Assembly (NCBI GenBank): GCA_024704765.1
Contig: JAKMXF010000122.1
Span: 186,001-250,000, forward strand
DNA length: 64,000 nt
From: Oopsacas minuta
Taxonomy: Eukaryota > Animalia > Porifera
Reading direction: 5' to 3'
Position 1 is the stretch's first letter. Each line of letters opens with the position of its first letter. Positions 4,531 through 44,581 of this stretch are shown here, piece by piece. The notes beneath the pieces were generated by a model. It was given only the letters and a program-made list of their open reading frames with translations, was not told the origin of the DNA and did no database searches. Position numbers and translations under genes: made by a program.

Positions 4531-5913
4531 CAGTCTGTCAACTTGAAATTGGGAAGATCTTTGTTTTTCCCTACTACAAGTACATTTAGTGTATTTCTAT
4601 TCTAATTATGTTATTAGAATCCTTAAACAATCAATAATATAGTAGGCCTAATAATTTATCTTATTTCCGTTACTTTTTCGTACTAATTTGACTCTTTTTG
4701 GCATCGATGACCAAAATGGACGTATAAATTCATGTTCTAAAGAATTCCATACTTCATTTAGCTCCCTTTCCAGCTTATTTAAATTTCGTGGTGACTTCAA
4801 ATCGATTTCTCTCTTGATCCACGACCAGAGGTTCTCGATCTGATTCAAATCCGTCTACAAGCAAGCCAATCCATCCTATGTATCCCTTTCTCCTCCATGT
4901 ATCCTTTAGCAAGTTTGCATGTGTGTTTGGGATCGTTGTCTTCCTGGAAAACCCATCCATCAGGGTGCAAGACACTTGCTTGTTCTACTAAACATTCGTG
5001 CAGAATGTCGCAGTAAAGGCGCCCGGTGAGATTTTCTCTGAAAACCTTGATATGAAACGTTCCACGTGCTGAAAACGCTCCCCAAACATGCAATTTAGGA
5101 AAGTGTTTCGTACTGGGTTTTACTGGTTTCGAATCACCTTTACACCAGACACATACTCTGCCACCAGCTAGCCAAATGGACATCTCATCGCTAAATATCA
5201 CTTTCTCCCAATCTCTACATCTGTTAGACTTAGCCCAATCGACACGATAAGCCTTATGGGTTTGTGTAAGCATCGGAATCTTTCTAGCAACCTTGCAGGT
5301 GAAGCCACGCCGCTTCATCTCAATCCTTACAGCCTCGTGTGAGAACGATAGACCCCACCTTTTGTAAAATTTGGAAGTCAACTTCCTCACAGATAACCTA
5401 GGATTGTTGATTGCCAAATTAACAAGTGATCTAGCGTTATTTGCTTTGATCTGACGCTGTTTCCCGGAACCAATCTTTCTATCAACGGATTCAGCATTCC
5501 TCAATTTGTAAACAGTGCGATAAACTGTACTTTTTGAAACTCCAGTTCTTCGAGATAATTCCATACAATTCGTGATTTCTGTGTCGAAAAGTATCTTGAC
5601 ATTGTTACGCTGTTCTTGCTCGTTCATTTTAACGTTTTGAATTGATGGAAGTAAAGAATTATTAGCGAAGAAATAGAAGTGTTGCGAGAAATTCAAGTGA
5701 TAAATATTCATATAGAATATTTGATTAGTAACCAAGTATAAATTGAAATATTTTGTAACCGCAGTCAGCTAGAGAAGTTCAGTTGGTTAAGAAATGACTA
5801 GAAATAGTTGAAAAACACAAATTATCAATATTATTACGATAACCAATTTGAAAATGCAATTAGGAACATTCTAGCATCGAAAAAGATTTTCCCAATTTCA
5901 AGTTGACAGACTG
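4531..5913 (-). mobile_element. Tc1-family transposon (DD34E), full-length
   Basis: TIR CAGTCTGTCAACTTGAAATTGGGAA (25 bp perfect, 32 bp with 1 mismatch) at 4531 and ending at 5913. TA TSDs at 4529-4530 and 5914-5915. Confidence 0.95.
4648..5627 (-). pseudogene. Tc1 transposase with a single frameshift near 4855
   Basis: N-terminal HTH (ELSRRTGVSKSTVYR), then IFSDE, FQEDNDPKH and DLNQIENLW. Repairing one lost base gives 34 residues between the second D and the E. Confidence 0.9.
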
Positions 5914-12630: not shown

Positions 12631-14571
12631 TTTGGCCAAAGGCACATAACTCTGTCTCACAAATTTTGCACGATTTTGCTTCTTGGACATAAGTGCTTCC
12701 TTATGTACTATTGAAAAATGCTGAGTCCTAATTGAAAATCTATTGTGTTCATCAAGTCACAATATTAGAATTCCACTCACAAAATTGGGAAATTCCCAAA
12801 TTGAGTAAAACATACCTGAGAAATAGCACGTAGTCATTTTAAACATGTGAAGGATTTTACACAATCGTATAATCATAGAGAATAATAGCCATGAAGAGTT
12901 TTTTATGGGCTAAATTGTTCGTTTTTCACGAAATCTCGATTAATTTACACCTACTGGCCTATTAAATAGATGGCTGAATATGTCCCCGAGAAATCCAAGG
13001 AACCTGAAGGCGAGTTCATAATTTCCTCATGCCAAACCTGCGTTCAGTTGTTACACTAATTTCAAAGAATGACCCAAGAAAACAGTTTTTATGTTTCAGA
13101 TGATCCAAAATTGTCCAAAAAAATGGTTTATGTTTTTACATCGATCATTTCAAAGATAGATTCACCATTTAGTATGAAGCCAGAACGACATGTGGATGGT
13201 TGTGAGTGGATCCATACTTATTCAATGTATCCACTCCTAACCATCCATCCTAACTTCACACCCTTAATTCTAAATCCAGTGACATGTGAGTCTAGAGAAA
13301 CTTCCAAGATAAAATATTTCATCTGATGAACTCCAGACTTATAAATCAAAATATGAAATCAAATATTTTTTATGTCGTCAAATTTATAAGTGATTCTGAA
13401 GAATACATAGAATTTCAATTTGATGTTTCAAATAACAATATGCCTACTAGGTTGTGAATTGAAAGAATGCATTCACATTGTTCTTAACCCTAAAGTGAAA
13501 CTCAGTTATGAAATCTTGCTATATTCCTTCTCCAAGTTATATTGATCCAGCTGAAGGATCCAAGCATACCAGAACTGGATATGCTAACAAATCTACCAGT
13601 ATACTGAAAGAATGCTGAAGGGTCTAAAGTAACAAATGTTATTAAAGAATTACTACAAAATACAATACTACATTCCAAAAGAAGACCACCATTCCACATC
13701 AGCATTAAGATTAGCACTTATTATGCGATATACATCTAACTCAGCATATCAATATTGGTTATATTGAGGGATAACTCATTATTCACCAACGATGCTGTAC
13801 TATTGTTAGACGAAATCTTCAGGTCGATAGGGAGAGAAATTATAATCGTTGGAAAACGGAGAGACCTATTTATCTGGGGAATTGAGCACCCATAGACAAT
13901 AAGTCGCGCACAGATGCTCTATCCCTGTTGATTCAGTACACATGACTTATGAAGCAGAAGTGCGAGTGAATCTCCATTTGAGAAGTCAGAATTCTTTAGA
14001 TCTAAATTGATGCATATTAACCAAATACCTTTGGGAAATCTTTGATTTTAGGACGTCCAAAATTTCGACCATAATCGATTATTGTAGAGTAATTATGAAA
14101 ATTGACGTATCATGAAGCAGACATTTTGGGCCTTTTGGTACCTAACATTATTTCGAAAATTTCTTCCTAAATACAAAAAGTATCTTCTGCTTCTAGCTAT
14201 TTTATTCAAAAAATCCTTCATTTTAAATTCACGCATTTATCAATTAAGAAACTAAATTAATAGCAATATTTATATTTTGAATTAAAAAATCATAGTTCGG
14301 TGCCAATTTTGATGAATTCCATTCAAATTTCATTTTGGCGGAACGCCAGTAATTTCCCTGTTTTTTGGGAATTCCTTCTTTACTGACCACAGATTCAGTG
14401 ACAAATATCAGAATTTTTTTCTATTTAATTCTACCATAGCGAAAATGTAATTTGGTCAAATTTCCACCCAAATTCCAGAAAATATGTTAGCCCGTCTTCA
14501 TAGAAATATCGGCCTCTGACTGATTTCATTTTAAATTTCTTTTGGAAACACATTGGACAGACGAATTTTTT

Positions 14572-15229
14572 GCATCTGTATATTTTGATCGAATTCTTTG
14601 TAGAACTTTGATCAAATTTTCTTATGTCGAACTTTGATCAAATGATGAAAAAGGCAAATTTTGATCAAAGTTCTACTTAAATGTCTTCAGTCGAACTTTG
14701 ATCGAAAAATTGTAGAACTTTGATCGAAAAATGAGAACTTTGATCGAAAAATGAGAACTTGATCGAAAAATGTAGAACTTTGATCGAATAATGAGAACTT
14801 TGATCGAAAAATGTAGAACTTTGATCGAAAAATGACAACTTTGATCGAAAAATGTAGAACTTTGATCGAAAGATGAGAACTTTGATCGAAAAATGTAGAA
14901 CTTGGATCGAAAGATGAGAACTTTGATCGAAAGATGAGAACTTTGATCGAATAATGTAGAACTTTGATCAAAAATGAGAACTTTGATCGAAAAATGTAGA
15001 ACTTTGATCGAAAAATGTAGAACTTTGATCGAAAAATTGTAGAACTTTGATCGAAAAATGAGTACTTATATTTATCACATAAATATCACGAGTTATATAA
15101 TTTGGTTAACTAACATGAGATTTCTTTTTATCAATTCGGGAACCAGTGTTTACGTGCAAAATATCTATTGCAGAAATCAGCCCAATAGAAGTTACGTCAC
15201 CAGAAATTATTGATTGAACGATTAATACG
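14572..15229. repeat. Left TIR (~660 bp) of the MULE, containing an 18-unit array of GAACTTTGATCGAAAAATG(T)A at 14693-15061
   Basis: Units of 20-21 bp counted directly. Reverse complement of 17625-18220. Confidence 0.95.
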
Positions 15230-15783
15230 ATCTAATTTGTACTATTTTGATCTGAAATCATCACTTTGACCTCATTGTTAGATTATTCCGATCGCAAATT
15301 TAGTGTTAGATTCAATGTGTGTGTCCCATCTTTAAAAATCATTCCATAGGCTTAGATGCTCAGCTATATATTTTGCAGTTTTTACTGTGCCGACTATACT
15401 TTAGTATGAGGCTCAGTATTGATCTCAGTGCTTATTTGTTTTGTATTTTTTTTGTCTCTTGTTTCCGTTTTCGTTCTCCAGGCCACACCGTTTACGATTA
15501 AGAGCTGAAAATTATCAAAGGGTTCAGTGTGAGTCTGTGCGACCTATAGATTTGTACCTTGGTATACGATTTTTGATCTGACATGATTTGCCACTTCTGT
15601 GCCAATTTAATTTACCATTGAAATTGTATTAACTTCTAGAAAATTCCAATGGTTCTGATTTCCCAAACTTTATTTTCTTTGAATATTTTACTGTGGTATT
15701 TAGAATTATCTTATCAATAGTTTGCATAGTTATCCTAAAGTACTCTTCGATATTTTATACATCGCTCTTATCCATCTCAATCA

Positions 15784-17391
15784 ATGGAATATAGTGTTAT
15801 TGAAGGTAAAAAAATTGGTTCTGTTAACTATGAATGTCAAAGCTTTCGATATATTCAGTCCTCCTCGTCCTCAACATCCATTTATTTGAGGTGTACCCTG
15901 TGGAGGTGCAAAGAAATTGAATGTCATGGTACAGGGCGAATTCATCTCACAACTAATCTTTTTTACCTAAAAAAAGATCACAATCATCCTGAAGCCTCCT
16001 ACGAATCCAGTGTAATAGTTCTAAATAATAGAATCAAACGTGCTGCAGAATCGTCAACAGGAAATCTAAGGGAAATCTTTGATGATGTGACTTCTACGGA
16101 TCAAGCAGGTGCATTAGTGAGTTATCGCAGTGTTCGAAATACGATGGTTAAAAGAAGAAGACTTGAATTACCAGGGAATCCTCTAACGCCTGAACAATTT
16201 GAAGTAATGATCAAGCAAACACGATTTTCACACTTTTTCCGAACAATGATAATCTCATCAGAAGGCTTTGCAGCTTTATTCTGGTCTGATTTTATGTTTG
16301 AATCTCTGAAAAATACTGATGCTATCAATTTTGATGCAACATTTTTTGTTGTCCCCAAATTATTTTACCAGTTGTTTACTATTTTCCTACAAGAAGGTCA
16401 TCATGCTTTGCCAGCCATACATATTTTAATGTCAAAAAAATCAGAATCTCTCTATGACGATGTTCTGCAAAAGGTAAGAGAATTTATGCCTGATTTCAAA
16501 CCAAAATTAGCTGTAGGTGACTATGAAAGGGCTTCAAGAAATTCATTTCGCACAGCTTTCAATTCGATAGAAGTATCAGGATGCCTGTTTCATTTTTCGA
16601 GAGCTATTTGGAAAAGGTTAACAAAGCTACATCTCACTTCTTCGTATACAAAGAACTCTGAGTTTAATGGATGGGTCAGGTCTGTTATGGTACTTCCCAT
16701 GTTACCTGAAGAAGAAATTCTACCAGTCTATAGATTGTTATCTGGAGTTACTCTACAAAATATGAATGATCATGAGATTATTAATCTTCAAAGGCTTAAG
16801 AGTTACATAAAGAGAGAATGGATTAACAGAAATGATTTATCAATATCCCATTCTATTCAAACAACTAATAACTGTTCTGAAGTATATCATCGGGGTTTAA
16901 AGTCTCTCATCCGTGTAAAAAAGCCTAGCCTATCGGCATTTATGGAATGTCTCGAAAAGACGCTGAAAAAATATGATCTTGAATACCAGAGAATGAAGAA
17001 TGACCTAGAAATTGGCGAGCGAAGTGCAAAGGATATAAATAATGAGAAAATTAGAAACAAATGTAAAGAAAAACTTCAAAGAAAAGAATGCACATCACTA
17101 GAATATATTAAAGAAATTTCAAATACTATTGGTAATCCGAAATTTTGGACTTATTCGGGATCTACGGAATTGGAAGAAAGTATAGATGAAACTTCTGATA
17201 GTTCAAGCGATGAAGAATCAATGGTGAAGAATCCGTGTATCATTTGTTTGAACAGTAGAGATTTAACGTTTGTCTTCATACCTTGTGGACATGCTAATGT
17301 ATGCGGAAATTGTGAACTGAATTTTACGCTCGGTGATAGATGCCCAGTTTGTCGTTCTATTATAATGAACAAGATGCAGATTTTCCAATAG
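15784..17391 (+). CDS. MULE DDE transposase (FLYWCH-like N-terminus) fused to a C-terminal C3HC4 RING finger
   Basis: Uninterrupted 535-aa ORF. N-terminal YLRC...C.G....DHNH motif. DDE triad in FDATF, GDYE and TNNCSE, plus the GCLFH CxxH motif. Acidic linker EESIDETSDSSSDEES, then C-x2-C-x12-C-x-H-x3-C-x2-C-x9-C-x2-C (CIIC...PCGHANVCGNC...CPVCR) starting at 17236. Confidence 0.92.
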   Translation: MEYSVIEGKKIGSVNYECQSFRYIQSSSSSTSIYLRCTLWRCKEIECHGTGRIHLTTNLFYLKKDHNHPEASYESSVIVLNNRIKRAAESSTGNLREIFDDVTSTDQAGALVSYRSVRNTMVKRRRLELPGNPLTPEQFEVMIKQTRFSHFFRTMIISSEGFAALFWSDFMFESLKNTDAINFDATFFVVPKLFYQLFTIFLQEGHHALPAIHILMSKKSESLYDDVLQKVREFMPDFKPKLAVGDYERASRNSFRTAFNSIEVSGCLFHFSRAIWKRLTKLHLTSSYTKNSEFNGWVRSVMVLPMLPEEEILPVYRLLSGVTLQNMNDHEIINLQRLKSYIKREWINRNDLSISHSIQTTNNCSEVYHRGLKSLIRVKKPSLSAFMECLEKTLKKYDLEYQRMKNDLEIGERSAKDINNEKIRNKCKEKLQRKECTSLEYIKEISNTIGNPKFWTYSGSTELEESIDETSDSSSDEESMVKNPCIICLNSRDLTFVFIPCGHANVCGNCELNFTLGDRCPVCRSIIMNKMQIFQ

Positions 17392-17624
17392 CAAAGTCAA
17401 TCCAACGTTTGACATGACAGTTTTAACTGAATATTAGAATTAGGTTAATGTGATAATATATTGTAGTTTAGTGATGGTATATTATCTAAAGTTAGATAAC
17501 GAATATTACTTTATAGTTACATTACCCATATGCTATTAGAATGTAGAAGTAATATATGTGTCATATGTGTGTTCTATCCTAAGTTGTTTAATACTTCTTT
17601 CAGTGAAGACTTATTACGTTAACA

Positions 17625-18220
17625 CGTATTAATAGTTCAATCAATAATTTTTGGTGACGTAAGTTAATTGAGCTGATTTCTGCCACAGATATTTTGCACA
17701 TGAACACACAAGTTCCCGAATTAATAAAAAGAAATCTTATGTTAGTTAACCAAATTATATAACTCGTGATATTTATGTGATAAATAAAAGAACTCATTTT
17801 TCGATCAAAGTTCTACATTTTTGATCAAAGTTGTCATTTTTCGATCAAAGTTCTACATTTTTCGATCAAAGTTCTCATTTTTCGATCAAAGTTCTACATT
17901 TTTCGATCAAAGTTCTACATTTTTCGATCAAGTTCTCATTTTTCGATCAAAGTTCTACATTTTTCGATCAAAGTTCTCATCTTTCGATCAAAGTTCTACA
18001 TTTTTCGATCAAAGTTGTCATTTTTCGATCAAAGTTCTACATTTTTCGATCAAGTTCTCATTTTTCGATCAAAGTTCTACAATTTTTCGATCAAAGTTCG
18101 ACTGAAGACATTTAAGTAGAACTTTGATCAAAATTTGCCTTTTTCATCATTTGATCAAAGTTCGACATAAGAAAATTTGATCAAAGTTCTACAAAGAATT
18201 CGATCAAAATATACAGATGC
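17625..18220. repeat. Right TIR (~595 bp) of the MULE, containing a 15-unit array at 17794-18099
   Basis: Inverted copy of the left TIR; units counted directly. Confidence 0.95.
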
Positions 18221-18239
18221 GAATTTTTTGCTTTCTCCA

Positions 18240-25500: not shown

Positions 25501-25621
25501 TTATACTTGATCTATTTGAACCTGCTATACGTGTAGACTAACCTTCAAATAGGAAGTTTTGACATTTTTACATATGTATAAGTCACATTATTATCAAGTT
25601 TATTTAATTTGCTCAACAATC

Positions 25622-25712
25622 CTGAGATTTCTCATTAAGAATTCGAAAACTACCGTATTTATGCAAAGTATTTATTGCAGAAATCAGCCTAATAGAAGTT
25701 ACGTCACCAAAA
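25622..25712. repeat. Solo remnant of the inner TIR segment of the MULE family
   Basis: TATTGCAGAAATCAGCCTAATAGAAGTTACGTCACC matches 15166-15201 (TATTGCAGAAATCAGCCCAATAGAAGTTACGTCACC). Confidence 0.7.
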
Positions 25713-26399
25713 TTGTATAATATGTACGATAAATACTTATTATGTGTAATACATCTTCATTGAAGGACTTATTAATAACCTAGCTATAATTTTATGATCG
25801 ACAGATATAACTGGATATCCACAATTGACTACCGATATTTTGCACTATTTTGACAATTTGAGGCATATGAAATATACATCGAATTCTATGAGCTATCTCT
25901 AAGTTCATCAAAAGGGGTTGAGCTAAAATAACTTCACTAATTCTGTTGATGATATAGAATCTGATATTAATCTATTATTTTCAGAGAAAATATGAACATT
26001 TAGAATTTTGTTTATAATTTTGTTTACTCATTCTAGTATTACAGTTCAGGCTACTGATGAAGCAGTTTTTGATTTCCAATTATCTCTCATTATAATATTC
26101 ATTAATGCATGGCACTCATCCAAGGCGATGGTGTCATTTAATATTTGAACCAGGGACAGCGATAATTTTGCTAAATAACTACTGTTAATCTTTGACCTGA
26201 TTTATGTTTTACTGGTCTGTAGTTATTCTCATGATCCACGTTATTGTTATCAAAACATTTTTCAGTTCGAAAGGATCTCATATGATTAGTAATTTGCGCT
26301 TTGCTCTCGAGAATTTCCGATCTTTGATGCTATGTCGCTTTCGATTTCAGAATTTTTATTGAGTTTTTTATAGACGTTTCCATAAAAATATACATTTAT

Positions 26400-31268: not shown

Positions 31269-33940
31269 CAGTGATGGATCCACCGGGGGGGGTTCAGGGG
31301 GGTGCGCACCCCCCAAATTGGCTTATTAATTAAATTTAATTATATATGTATAAATTCCCATGAGTAATGAATGTACACTGTACTTAACATAATTATATAA
31401 ATATAATTATTAACTTTATAGCCTAATATTAAATATCTTTCAAGTCAACCTATTAAGTACTTATATGAAACGACAAGTGGAAAACCAACTTACACTGGAT
31501 TATTTTCAATCCAAACGAGATAACAACAGACCAGATGGTTGCGAAGACGAATATCCATGCTTCATGCATACTGAACAACAGGCAGTAGATAACAGTGTGC
31601 TTGAGATTAACAGCTCTGCTGGGATGATACAGGGTAGATTTTATGTTTTCAAACCCAGAGCTAAATTTACGTACTAAATTTTCTAGATATAAACACCGAC
31701 TGGTCTCTGCCTCAAGACATTGGTTGTAAGAAAGATGGACCTGCCCAACCATTAACCCTCTTCCCTCCTAAACCTGATTGTAACAAACGAAAAACAACCA
31801 ATTCCAGGCATCGTGGTCTAGTAAACACCCCTGGATCGCTTACAGCGAATCGCAAGACAAAGCATTTTGTTTTCTATGTATAAACTTCAGCATCACAAAG
31901 TTACAGGACAGGTTTACAAAAAGGGATTTCATAATTGGCAAGTTGCAGTTGGAGACAAAAACAAGGGGCTAGACAAGCATGCTAGGTGTGAATCCCACAT
32001 TATAGCTATTATGAAATGGGAAAACTATAAGTCTAACCCTGTCGAGATCCAGGAAAGACTTAATCCTAATCGTCGCATGCAGGTTGAGCAAAATAGAATC
32101 TATTTCGGTAAACTTGTCAGCTATATCAGGTGGTTTTGTCTTCAGAAAGTCGCTTTTCGAGGTGAGGAGGAACACGATGTCGGATTAGTCTGTAGAGGAA
32201 ACTTCAGAGAACTTCTTGAATTAGAATTCGAGCTGCATCCCGAATTCCTAGCCCAGAAGAAGTCTATTATGGAGCAGTACTCAATTTACACAGATTATCT
32301 CAGTAAGACGGTCTACGAAGAATTTATCTCAATCATGGCTGGCGAGATTAGGAAAATTATTGCAAGAGAGATTGCTCAAACAAAGTTCTACACATTAGTG
32401 TTGGACGAAGCTAAGGATGTCAGCGGCTATGAGCAGCTTTGTTTATGTGTAAGATATTGCTCAGGATCTGTTCCAGCTGAAAGATTAATGGGGCTCATAT
32501 GTCTTTCAGAGGGTCTATTTGATGCATGTGCTATAGTCCGTGGAGCTAAAGTTCTTATTCAATTGCTGTCTGGTTCTGGGTGTACACTAGTGGGATAAGC
32601 AGCTGATGGTGCTTCTGTTATGTCCGGTAAATTGGCTGGAGTGCAAGCTCTCCTTAAGGAAGAACATCTGTGGCTTATCTACGTGCACTGTGCTGCACAT
32701 AGGCTTAATTTGGTTTTAGTAAAGGCTCTCAAAAATTTGTGTCCAGCTATGATCAATATAGTGGACAAACTCCACTCGCTATTCAATTCAGCTAAAACGA
32801 ATGACAGTTTTGAAGCCGAGCAAAAGACACTCAAGATCAGGGTGCTAAAGTTTCCATTACGATCAGAAACAAGGTGGTCATCCATGTTCCACGTACTAGA
32901 TGTTATATGCTCTCACTTTAAACCGATCATGCTCACTCTTATGAAAAGGATAGGGGATGACGACAACGCAGCACTAACTGCTGGCGGTCTTTACCACAAG
33001 ATGGCGTGTGGTGAGTTCATAATTAATTGCGTCGTTCTGAGGAAAGCCCTTGCAACTATTCACAGCCTGAGTGAATATTTACAGGGAGCATCAATTGAGC
33101 GGCATCACGTTGCACACGATATTAGAGCCTGTAAGTCAATGATTAGTCAGTTTGGAAACGAAATGTCTGTTGCTGAAATGTTGAAACAAGCAGAAGAAAT
33201 CAGTACTGATTGCTGATACCCCTAAATGTGACCTCACCAGTTAACATAACAAGAAATTCAACAGAACATGTTGATTACTTGAGCCATATACAATCATTTT
33301 CAACAAAGGTTTGCACAAAGTCTTAGCTGAATTAGAATTACGATTTCCTGACACTGGTATGGAGCTGCTCAAAGGCCTAGATGGCCTGAATAGCACTTCA
33401 CAAAAGTACTTAAAAAGGAAAACACTTAGTAAATTAATTGCTCATTATGGTGACGTATTAGACGTTAATGAGAAGTTACTTAATGCAGAATTAGCAAAGT
33501 ATCACATGTTTGCTAATTCTGGATCTCGTATAGTAACCATGAATCCGGCTTTCTATCCCAATCTGATGAAACTCTTTAATTTAAAGAGAAGCTTGCCTGT
33601 ATCATCAGCAGAAGCAGAGAGAAGTTTCTCAACGATGAAACGGGTGAAAACCTAACAAAGAAACCGTCTTGATGACACACGTTTATCAGACCTCTGCCTC
33701 CTAGCTTCTGAAAAAGAATTGACCAAAGCTCTCAACATGAATAGCATAATGGATATCTTCAATCTGAAAGAAAGAAGGGTGCCTCTATAATTATAAATTA
33801 TCTATTAATTTACAATAATAAATGCTTAGTTGATTAATTGTTGATTAATTGATAGTTAAATAACCCCGGCTCAGATTCGGCTTGCTTGTCTCGCCGCTGG
33901 GCATTGCACCCCCCAGATATTTGTGCTGGATCCATCACTG
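31269..33940 (+). mobile_element. hAT transposon (ZMYM1/Tip100-like), full-length but decayed
   Basis: 14-bp TIR CAGTGATGGATCCA. Perfect 8-bp TSD ATCATTTG (31261-31268 / 33941-33948). Confidence 0.95.
31740..33790 (+). pseudogene. hAT transposase pseudogene (TTF zinc finger, DUF4371-like region, dimerisation domain)
   Basis: FQASWSSKHPWIAYS, LVLDEAKD, *AADGASVMSG, VHCAAHRLNL, SETRWSS and SAEAERSFS. Premature stops at ~32596, ~33214 and ~33653, plus frameshifts. Confidence 0.9.
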
Positions 33941-42590: not shown

Positions 42591-44581
42591 TAGTAGAAGC
42601 TCGCAAACAGGGGCACCTTGGCGTTTCTGAAAAGTGCACCGGTTTGGGAGAGTGCCCCGGTTTGCGAGCTTCACAATATTTTCCAACTGAATTTGGATTA
42701 TGCTACAGTCTAGACTTCTTTTCACTTAAATAGACATGATTACATTGTTTAATAAATTATTCCAACCAATATCTGTATTGCTAGTCAATAAATGGTAATA
42801 TAATCGAATATTCGAACCCAATATTGGGCTTACTTATGATCACTGGCGAAGTAGTCACTAATTTGGGACTGTTTTTGTTCTTGGGTGTGTCTTGCAGCTA
42901 CTACCATCAAGTAGTTTTCAAACTTAAAATTCCCTCAAGAACTTCCTCATCACCACAACCCAAGGCATACATCTGAAGCACTCGAATAGCTTCTAGTGCG
43001 GATTTTAAAGTCGGGATAGGAAAAGCTTTAGATAGATCACCCTCAGAATCGCATTCAATTCCACAATCTTTGTCATGGACGTTTAGCCTTTGGGTGACAT
43101 TAATTAACGCTTCCTCAATGAGCTCTTCAGGACTGATTACAGGGGGAAAAATCCCATATTCGTCATTTTCTTCTATCTGAATTTGAATCTCCTTTGGATT
43201 TATGATCATGGGTAGCTCGGGGACAACAGTTGCAACTCCAAACCCGCACTTCGAAAAGCATTATGAGATCGTTCGGGCATTCACTTGATTCCAGGCTCGA
43301 GATGCCCAAACTATAACAAGGGCAATTGTAATCATTTTATAAGGGTCACCGTTAGGTTTATTAATTTTGTCAGTATTCACCATATGTGTCAATAGATTCT
43401 CATGCACCTGTTTACTATATAGCAATTTGAGAGACTGGATAATACCGGCATTTAATGGTTGGGTACAACTCGTGATGTTGCAAGGGGAATATGCAAGCTG
43501 TACTGCCTTTAAACTAAGCCCATCATAGGCTTTGTGGACACTTGCATTGTCCATGAACATTAGGATTTTCCTACCTGATTTGTACATTCTGTTGTCGAAG
43601 TCCTTCATCCAAGAGCAAAATATAAGACCAGTCATCCATGCCTTCCTCTGAGCCTTGTACACAACAGGTAATTTGGACATGTCTGCACCTTTCAAAGCCC
43701 TTGGTTTCTTGCTCTTCCATATCAGGAGTAGTTTCTCTTTTCACCAAGCATAGATGTACAGACCATGAGAGTGAGGCGAGATTTGTCCTGTTAATACCAT
43801 GAGCGGTATCTTTAGGAAGAACAAGGGACTTGGTGGTTGTTGTCCTGAAATATAACCCAGTTTCATCTCGGTTATAGATATCTTCCGGCTTATAAGACCC
43901 AATGATCCTAGGCAAGTCCTCTTCCCAATTCTTAAAAACCACCTTTTTAACACCTGCTGCATCACCTCTAAGTGCTCTTCCACAGAGCCCATAACGCGCC
44001 TTCACTCTCGAAAGCCATCCCTTTGAAGCCTTAAATCCCTCCACTCCATTTGCACCAGCTTCCCTCTCAGCTAGGGTACGAAGCATAGGGCCAGTTACGG
44101 CCATTCCTCGATCTCGCGCTAATTTCAGGAATTCAATAACAGCAGTCTCGATATCTTCGTACATGGGAACAACAACAGAGTGCTTTCGTTTCCTGATGTT
44201 CTCAGTGATTTCACTTGTTTCGTCTATTTGCAACTGAATTGCCACGCGATTGGATTTGATACTGTTAATTGCTCCTTTACCCACATTGAAGAATTCAGCT
44301 ACTATACGCTCACTCTTGCCATCATCCAACATCCTAAGAGCATTTTGTCGTGTTCGATGGTTGGGGCAGACTTGTGTGAAGTTTGATAGTAGACATGTAG
44401 TTTTTATAGTAAAAAGGCAAACTAAGCAATTAATATAATTTGGTTGTTCTCTGTTCAACGGTTTGTTGTCCAGAATTTATTGGCTACAATTTATACAGCT
44501 TAGTGCATCCTAAGGGTAGGATACAATGAAGACCAAGGGCACGGATACAATGGTGGTGCCCCGGTTTGCGAGCTTCTACTG
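42591..44581 (-). mobile_element. pogo/Tigger transposon nested in the Ac-type hAT
   Basis: 27-bp TIRs (T/C)AGTAGAAGCTCGCAAAC(A/C)GGGGCACC with 2 mismatches. TA at 42589-42590 and TG (probably a mutated TA) at 44582-44583. Confidence 0.92.
42907..44396 (-). pseudogene. Tigger/CENP-B-like transposase pseudogene
   Basis: CENP-B HTH (GPMLRTLA...FKASKGWLSRVKARYG), YNRDETGLYF, MFMDNASVH and QPLN (third D replaced by N, 32-residue spacing). Frameshifted. Confidence 0.9.

Follow-up and report, generated by a model that had tools for sequence, protein, structure and literature searches.

The 64,000-nucleotide stretch of DNA analyzed here (hereafter, the window) comes from the hexactinellid sponge Oopsacas minuta (GenBank assembly GCA_024704765.1, contig JAKMXF010000122.1 from position 186,001; all coordinates are positions in the window). 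It contains, at 14572-18220, a complete transposon of 3,649 bp, whose sole gene, the open reading frame (ORF) at 15784-17391 (+), encodes a transposase of the Mutator superfamily ending in a C3HC4 RING finger. With near certainty, this is an intact, young, and autonomous Mutator-like element (MULE), and the RING is, as regards the conservation of the fusion, with the same near certainty an ancestral and selectively maintained part of a large metazoan MULE clade, not a local capture. Judging from their sequences, these transposases probably carry their own ubiquitin-ligase (E3) module. While the fusion had been noticed in a first-pass annotation of the window, the tie between the ORF and its element goes beyond it.

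The gene consists of a single exon of 535 codons plus the stop, uninterrupted as first described, and its homologs start with MEY, MEF, or MAY at the same position. A frame of 535 codons in DNA of about 32% G+C is far beyond chance, and a chance ORF was rejected. Pfam recognizes two domains in the product: MULE (PF10551; residues 181-272, E 1.2e-9, 38.9 bits for a cut-off of 27.6 bits) and zf-C3HC4_3 (PF13920; residues 482-527, E 4.8e-9, 36.3 bits for a cut-off of 27 bits). An AlphaFold2 model, built on 32 homologs and compared with PDB structures using Foldseek, reaches a mean predicted local distance difference test score (pLDDT) of 88.8 and a predicted template modeling (pTM) score of 0.70, with only residues 452-481 below a pLDDT of 50. 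Pfam, the model, and Foldseek recover the domain order that the first-pass annotation expected, i.e., a FLYWCH-like finger, a MULE core, and a zf-C3HC4_3 domain.

The MULE DDE core occupies residues 121-451 (16144-17136, +) and adopts, according to Pfam and Foldseek, an RNase H fold with a helical insertion. All the MULE catalytic residues are present, as had been claimed: D184 (16333-16335), D246 (16519-16521), the C267xxH270 motif, and E366 (16879-16881), all on the + strand, are invariant in 32 of 32 homologs sharing 25-63% identity with the query. The IS256 family is a bacterial relative of MULEs, and it is the IS256-family transposase ISCth4 that the core matches in Foldseek (E 5e-5), with weaker matches to the P-element, Hermes, and foamy-virus integrase cores. 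Near the start of the core, residues 124-127 (RRRL in VKRRRLELPG; 16153-16164) form a basic patch, of which R124 and R125 are invariant in eight sponge-type homologs. This KRRR motif, modeled inside a helix (residues 114-128), could be a nuclear-localization signal or a DNA contact.

Residues 1-70 (15784-15993, +) form a FLYWCH-like zinc-finger DNA-binding domain with the WRKY-GCM1 fold, as in Phantom-type MULEs. The Pfam FLYWCH model stayed below reporting on the window protein (not reaching E ≤ 1), and the domain was identified by its fold, a paralog, and its ligands. The N-terminal beta strands are modeled with a pLDDT of about 90-95, and the first 70 residues match the FLYWCH domain 2rpr (template modeling (TM) score 0.67, root-mean-square deviation (rmsd) 2.3 Å, probability 1.0). 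The close paralog P0014 has a Pfam FLYWCH domain (PF04500), and the ligands C37, C47, H66, and H68 are invariant in alignment A1.

At the other end, the core is followed by a disordered linker (residues 452-484; 17137-17235, +) with the acidic and serine-rich stretch ELEESIDETSDSSSDEES, and then by the RING (residues 485-535; 17236-17388, +), where the protein closes with CPVCRSIIMNKMQIFQ; both stretches are as the first-pass annotation claimed. The RING is modeled with a pLDDT above 90 over residues 490-530, and its C-terminal tail of 12 residues ends in IFQ. Its fold matches the MUL1 RING (6m2c; TM score 0.79, rmsd 1.9 Å), and phmmer against the PDB gives cIAP1, XIAP, cIAP2, BIRC7, and MUL1 as the closest solved RINGs (E 3e-8 to 4e-6), which bears out the proposed assignment to the class of the inhibitor-of-apoptosis (IAP) proteins.

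The transposon around this gene has well-defined ends. Its left terminal inverted repeat (TIR), of about 658 bp (14572-15229, +), and its right TIR, of about 596 bp (17625-18220, -), were found by blastn of the element against itself (element positions 1-658 versus 18220-17625, 85% match). Both ends begin with GCATCTGTATATTTTGATCG, and the outermost 169 bp are identical in inverted orientation. Each TIR contains an array of a 20-21-bp unit, GAACTTTGATCGAAAAATGTA, detected by Tandem Repeats Finder: 18.3 copies in the left TIR (14693-15067, +; 90% matches), and about 15 copies in the right TIR (17795-18099, -; reported as 7.5 copies of a 41-bp double unit, with 95% matches). These arrays account for the difference in length between the TIRs. 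Their units are presumed to be transposase-binding sites, and the repeat core, TTGATCGAA, has a single occurrence in the remaining 60 kb of the window. On both sides of the element, at 14563-14571 and 18221-18229, lies the same 9-bp sequence, GAATTTTTT, a perfect direct repeat that constitutes the target-site duplication (TSD). Mutator elements and MULEs are recognized by TIRs combined with a TSD of 8-11 bp, and a 9-bp TSD is the classical Mutator target-site duplication; the element has both features. Elsewhere in the window, an isolated sequence at 25583-25775, 79% identical to the inner TIR outside the array, is probably the remnant of an older copy.

Several observations concern the recent mobility of the element. 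The window protein clusters at ≥90% identity with three O. minuta proteins (KAI6658186.1, KAI6660539.1, and KAI6661986.1), to one of which UniRef gives the name 'RING-type domain-containing protein'. A second O. minuta copy (L008:1624-6070, on JAKMXF010000099.1) has identical termini and an interior 99.4% identical to that of the window copy; the two coding sequences differ by three non-synonymous and no synonymous changes, a comparison uninformative for the ratio of non-synonymous to synonymous substitution rates (dN/dS). Its TIR arrays are much longer, the 41-bp double unit being repeated 13 and 23 times, versus 9 and 7.5 times in the window element, and no TSD was found at its ends, where the flanks read ATGGCCAAA versus ATTGAAACA. 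Array expansion, recombination between copies, or an assembly effect are possible reasons for these differences.

In contigs from public sequencing runs, word depth is about 300-550 over the ORF, versus about 35-48 on the unique flanks, which suggests roughly 8-10 near-identical copies, contig depth being a poor measure of copy number. In two runs (X4 and X2), contigs join 14639 to 18141, skipping 3,501 bp, with 10 other letters (GAAATTTCCC) in between and a word depth of about 82. This joint is an internally deleted, TIR-only derivative of the element, comparable to a miniature inverted-repeat transposable element. The second copy, the depth, the TIR-only derivative, and the identical termini with their TSD therefore indicate that the family was active very recently. 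Related, partly decayed copies also exist outside the source sample: in run X7 (organism C, another organism or sample), copies differ from the window copy by about 5-10%, and one contig has a 169-bp deletion in the transposase core (16740 to 16910).

The RING is not a peculiarity of this copy. A word-indexed search retrieved seven more full-length proteins, with 63-29% identity, and the RING is present in 7/7. An exhaustive search of 1.84 billion representatives gave 8,258 matches at E ≤ 1e-3 and 125 at E ≤ 1e-30, many of the alignments being continuous from the N-terminus to about residue 534; most of the representatives among the relatives are eukaryotic metagenome contigs. Counts were made on non-redundant relatives only, 62 of which have a break inside the core and 111 a C-terminus that can be judged. 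The RING is found in 70 of these 111 (59 recognized by a pattern and 11 by a profile alignment that extends to the RING end), at a distance of 11-13 residues from the protein end in nearly all carriers, and the architecture recurs, with the same tail length, in dozens of clusters set apart at 50% identity.

The first-pass annotation named as a counter-indication other family members ending before the RING; none do, unless truncated or decayed. For example, among the close RING-less relatives, P0005 has a frameshift, P0010 breaks off within the RING, and P0002 is truncated. Pfam detected no replacement domain in RING-less relatives, some of these proteins being concatenated gene calls. In a maximum-likelihood tree of the MULE core, RING carriers stand on both sides of every deep split and RING-less proteins are scattered among them, a pattern parsimoniously explained by one ancient acquisition with subsequent losses and truncations.

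Carriers come from distant animals. They include LOC124806256 and LOC124809360 of Hydra vulgaris and LOC135120914 of the beetle Zophobas morio, a protein that also has an acidic linker and a C-terminal RING, and an ESM-Atlas cluster of 77 mostly arthropod proteins has zf-C3HC4_3 in 91% and MULE in 71% of its members. The matches of a profile search with alignment A2 were limited to the sponge set and one fly protein, and a Hydra query added Hydra paralogs, Zophobas morio, and metagenome proteins. The sponge-type subfamilies form one clade (support 0.89), and the terminal motif CTGTATATTTTGATC is common to related sponge elements. One of them, the element of P0009 (L004:2167-5790), encodes a protein 40% identical to the window protein and has its own 45-bp TIRs and an 8-bp TSD, AATCAAAC. 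Between its left TIR and its ORF, at L004:2219-3708, lie inverted arrays of a 31-bp unit (ATGTAGGCGTTAGTTCGAAT...), a block representing a nested, foldback-like insertion or else repeats internal to the element. The L001 element has a truncated or interrupted left end, and no inverted repeats were found around the homologs in L005 (10 kb) and L002 (3 kb). The rarity of the fusion was thus overstated at first: it is a widespread and already deposited family, found throughout public protein sets, labeled as RING in UniRef for Oopsacas, and partly glimpsed in the literature, where a RING is noted in Ghost elements and in MuDR-37_Pi.

The conservation of the RING can be followed at individual positions in 70 family members, of which 69 were scored at P521, R524, and 527, and 55 at 534. 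The zinc ligands, C-x2-C...C-x-H-x2-C-x2-C...C-x2-C, are 96-100% conserved, and the Cys columns are invariant to the same degree as the DDE triad. Beyond the ligands, the Pro before the last Cys (P521) is kept in 61/69, Ile or Val at position 527 in 60/69, and the hydrophobic residues in CxxC-L across the family. The Arg that follows the last Cys and the aromatic residue of the tail, both pointed out in the first-pass annotation, are found in 53/69 (R524) and 49/55 (Phe or Tyr at 534), respectively. The window protein itself has the complete set of residues predicted, from sequence evidence, to activate E2~ubiquitin (E2, ubiquitin-conjugating enzyme): I486/I487/L489, P521, R524, and F534, the latter aligning with Phe616 of cIAP1. 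In the structure of cIAP1 with UbcH5B and ubiquitin, Phe616 is contributed by the opposite subunit of the RING dimer and packs against the donor ubiquitin, and the F616H mutant is inactive; this tail contact in trans holds likewise for BIRC7, RNF4, and MDM2-MDMX (PMC6349121).

Constraint on the RING is comparable to that on the catalytic core. In comparisons between the six sponge subfamilies, the RING averages an identity of 0.515, close to the 0.511 of the core, and the linker averages 0.197. Nei-Gojobori estimates of dN/dS between the window gene and L001 are 0.12 for the RING, 0.11 for the core, 0.61 for the linker, and 0.108 for the whole gene, of which only the ranking is safe, as dS is saturated at about 2. 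Within subfamilies, amino-acid differences are few and evenly spread over the domains, as expected for copies that decay neutrally after insertion. Neutral evolution of the RING, another of the conditions that had been set against its significance, does not fit the sequences compared between subfamilies.

With the ligands and activation residues conserved and the domain under constraint, E3 activity is plausible, and a working E3 is the favored reading of these sequences, held with somewhat better than even confidence. Several points weigh against it. The Arg after the last Cys is missing in 16 of the 69 scored members, and some small subclades either have no RING or cannot be judged at the C-terminus. 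The deeper dN/dS comparison is the saturated one, and the only unsaturated pair, L006 versus L007 (dS 0.35; core 0.16, linker 0.236, whole gene 0.18), gives a RING value of 0.42 from 5.5 synonymous and 9.5 non-synonymous changes, which is not clearly below 1 alone. In addition, the public runs containing the sequence consist of fragmented, high-depth, DNA-like contigs, the conservation of ligands and dimer tail would fit a purely structural dimerization module too, and the substrate and biological role are inferred.

Such a structural module is the rival that survives best, although it is judged fairly unlikely. The RING would then be a non-catalytic zinc module for dimerization or for DNA/TIR binding, with no ubiquitin-ligase role, and the conserved zinc ligands and tail would be explained equally well. 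It appears to sit at the C-terminal place where other MULE transposases have SWIM; for example, in an Atlas fold search, models of a SWIM fungal MULE and of plant FAR1-like proteins align over residues 26-535 and 1-535, respectively. The element also has large arrays of short TIR repeats, and a precedent exists in the cysteine-rich domain (CRD) of piggyBac, which is likewise a C-terminal cross-brace zinc domain of a DDE transposase with short internal repeats at its ends, and which binds the TIR repeats (PMC5861402). Nevertheless, the piggyBac CRD is described there as PHD-like and DNA-binding, whereas the present domain is a zf-C3HC4_3 with predicted E2~ubiquitin features. Residues that are not needed for folding and are typical of E2~ubiquitin activation (the Pro, the Arg, and the hydrophobics in CxxC-L) are kept at the frequencies given above, the closest sequence relatives are active E3 RINGs (cIAP1, XIAP, BIRC7, and MUL1) and not PHD- or CRD-type fingers, and the protein already has a DNA-binding domain in its FLYWCH-like finger.

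A second alternative, distinctly improbable, accepts an active E3 and directs it mainly against host silencing, chromatin, or repair factors, for counter-defense or repair recruitment; host-factor targeting was the third option of the first-pass annotation. The sequence hallmarks of an active E3 serve this reading equally, and the long flexible linker would let the RING reach neighboring proteins. However, neither Pfam nor the AlphaFold2 model reveals a substrate-binding domain besides the transposase itself, the data point to no particular host target, and a host range as broad as sponge, cnidarian, and beetle is harder to reconcile with a host-specific one. Finally, a domesticated host gene, a one-off Pack-MULE-like RING capture, or an assembly or gene-call artefact is highly improbable: even if no TIRs or TSDs were found for RING-bearing Ghost elements, for which domestication was raised (Dupeyron et al., PMC6446971), and no inverted repeats around the L005 and L002 homologs, domestication and capture are already contradicted at the window locus, and were rejected, given the perfect termini and TSD, the several near-identical copies with a deletion derivative, the recurrence of the same architecture and tail length in dozens of 50%-identity clusters, and the 40%-identical relative with its own TIRs and TSD.

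If the RING is a working E3, a mechanism can be proposed from its likeness to characterized RINGs. The FLYWCH-like domain would most likely bind the 20-21-bp TIR repeats, and the DDE core would carry out cut-and-paste chemistry as in other MULEs. The RING, on its flexible acidic linker of about 30 residues, would homodimerize through its tail, as in cIAP1, XIAP, and BIRC7, once two transposase subunits on paired transposon ends bring their C-terminal RINGs together. Contacts with a UbcH5-type E2~ubiquitin would be made by the conserved hydrophobic/Pro surface of each RING and by the Arg that follows its last Cys, and the tail Phe or Tyr of the partner subunit would lock the donor ubiquitin in a closed, reactive state. 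The likeliest substrates would be the transposase itself and proteins next to the transpososome, and the outcome would be either a turnover by which the transposase limits itself or its ubiquitin-dependent removal once strand transfer is over, by analogy with the auto-ubiquitylation of RAG1. A role in turnover or disassembly with the transposase as main substrate is held with much less confidence than the E3 activity, as less likely than not. The activity of this RING class depends on dimerization, and a transposase must pair to synapse two ends, so the simplest model would be an E3 switched on in the assembled complex. In its full form, a clade-wide, assembly-gated E3, whose RINGs dimerize and activate E2~ubiquitin only on paired TIRs, this model is unlikely as it stands.

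The closest counterpart in the literature is the 'Ghost' clade of MULEs, described in aphids, spiders, and cnidarians (Dupeyron, Singh, Bass & Hayward 2019, Mob DNA 10:12; PMC6446971). In two Myzus cerasi Ghost copies, the RING is encoded by a 420-bp ORF of its own, next to a transposase with a frameshift; the study found no complete element, TIR, or TSD, considered domestication, and listed the RING as a zinc finger, with no E3 reading (PMC6446971). The same study lists MuDR-37_Pi with a C3HC4 ring finger. By description, both Ghost and the present family combine an invertebrate MULE with a RING (Table S2 lists the Ghost copies with RING), but the present case differs in its complete element, its in-frame RING fusion, and its sponge host. 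The arthropod Atlas cluster combining MULE and zf-C3HC4_3 may correspond to Ghost. A word search with a core motif gave no match in the supplements of Dupeyron 2019, where the alignment was available in part.

Phantom and Muta1 MULEs resemble the present element in their FLYWCH-type N-terminus, single ORF, 8-10-bp TSD, and TIRs that can reach several hundred bp (table in PMC6446971). However, descriptions of Phantom and Muta transposases mention FLYWCH, SWIM, or no finger, and no C-terminal RING. In the Atlas, the whole-fold match that ranks best, to an arthropod FLYWCH-MULE cluster (TM score 0.75), covers residues 3-473 and ends before the RING.

The RING has its own relatives outside transposons. 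With the RINGs of IAPs and MUL1 it shares the motifs VFIPCGH, CPxCR, and I-I, a Phe 2-3 residues from the C-terminus, and a position at the extreme C-terminus of the protein. It differs from IAPs and MUL1 in lacking BIR, UBA, CARD, and transmembrane parts, its partners being a DNA-binding finger and a DDE nuclease, and the pre-RING helix that aids dimerization in IAPs is replaced in the AlphaFold2 model by the disordered acidic linker.

RAG1 and Chapaev/Transib likewise combine a RING with a DDE transposase or a descendant of one. The RAG1 RING is an E3 that auto-ubiquitylates (refs 19 and 20 in PMC4411706), and Kapitonov and Koonin stated in 2015 that RING fingers are not encoded in transposable elements beyond the Chapaev/Transib relatives of RAG1 (PMC4411706). 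In the RAG1 type, which belongs to the Transib/CMC superfamily, the RING is of another subtype and lies N-terminal to the core, after the Chapa domain. Given the different superfamily, RING position, and RING subtype, the MULE-RING fusion is most likely an event independent of the RAG1 lineage. A full-text search, in which subscription journals and Repbase Reports were not covered, returned no paper treating a MULE-RING transposase as a ubiquitin ligase.

Transposons also abound in the remainder of the window. Other transposase remnants are P-element/TNP-like, with an RNase H N-terminal part and a GTP-binding insertion (1005-2465, +), Tc1-like, with HTH_Tnp_Tc3_2 and DDE_3 (4845-5735, -), hAT-associated, with DUF4371 (31867-32598, +), and of the pogo/Tc5 helix-turn-helix type (43571-44458, -). 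The first-pass annotation called the MULE gene the only uninterrupted transposase ORF in the window. It is the sole MULE copy there; beyond this, the statement is roughly right, the other transposase-like ORFs (P/TNP-like, 486 amino acids; Tc1-like, 296 amino acids; hAT and pogo pieces) looking partial.

What the RING does in RAG1 has been a matter of debate for two decades. The present family offers a second, apparently independent transposase-RING fusion, in the Mutator superfamily, constrained across sponges, cnidarians, and insects. It also supplies the complete elements, with TIRs and TSD, that were lacking for 'Ghost'-type RING-bearing MULEs, in which what was recorded as a 'zinc finger' appears, from the sequences, as an E3-type RING that forms an in-frame fusion. 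Being compact (3.6 kb), single-exon, and apparently active, the window element constitutes a simple system for addressing the role of a ubiquitin ligase in a cut-and-paste transposase, be it self-limitation, transpososome disassembly, chromatin marking, or counter-defense. If the assembly-gated model were true, ubiquitylation would be coupled to synapsis or strand transfer, leading to the removal of a very stable transpososome or to a repair mark. These MULEs would then possess a built-in eukaryotic equivalent of the way in which ClpX disassembles the Mu transpososome, and their RING would be a parallel to that of RAG1 with an independent origin.

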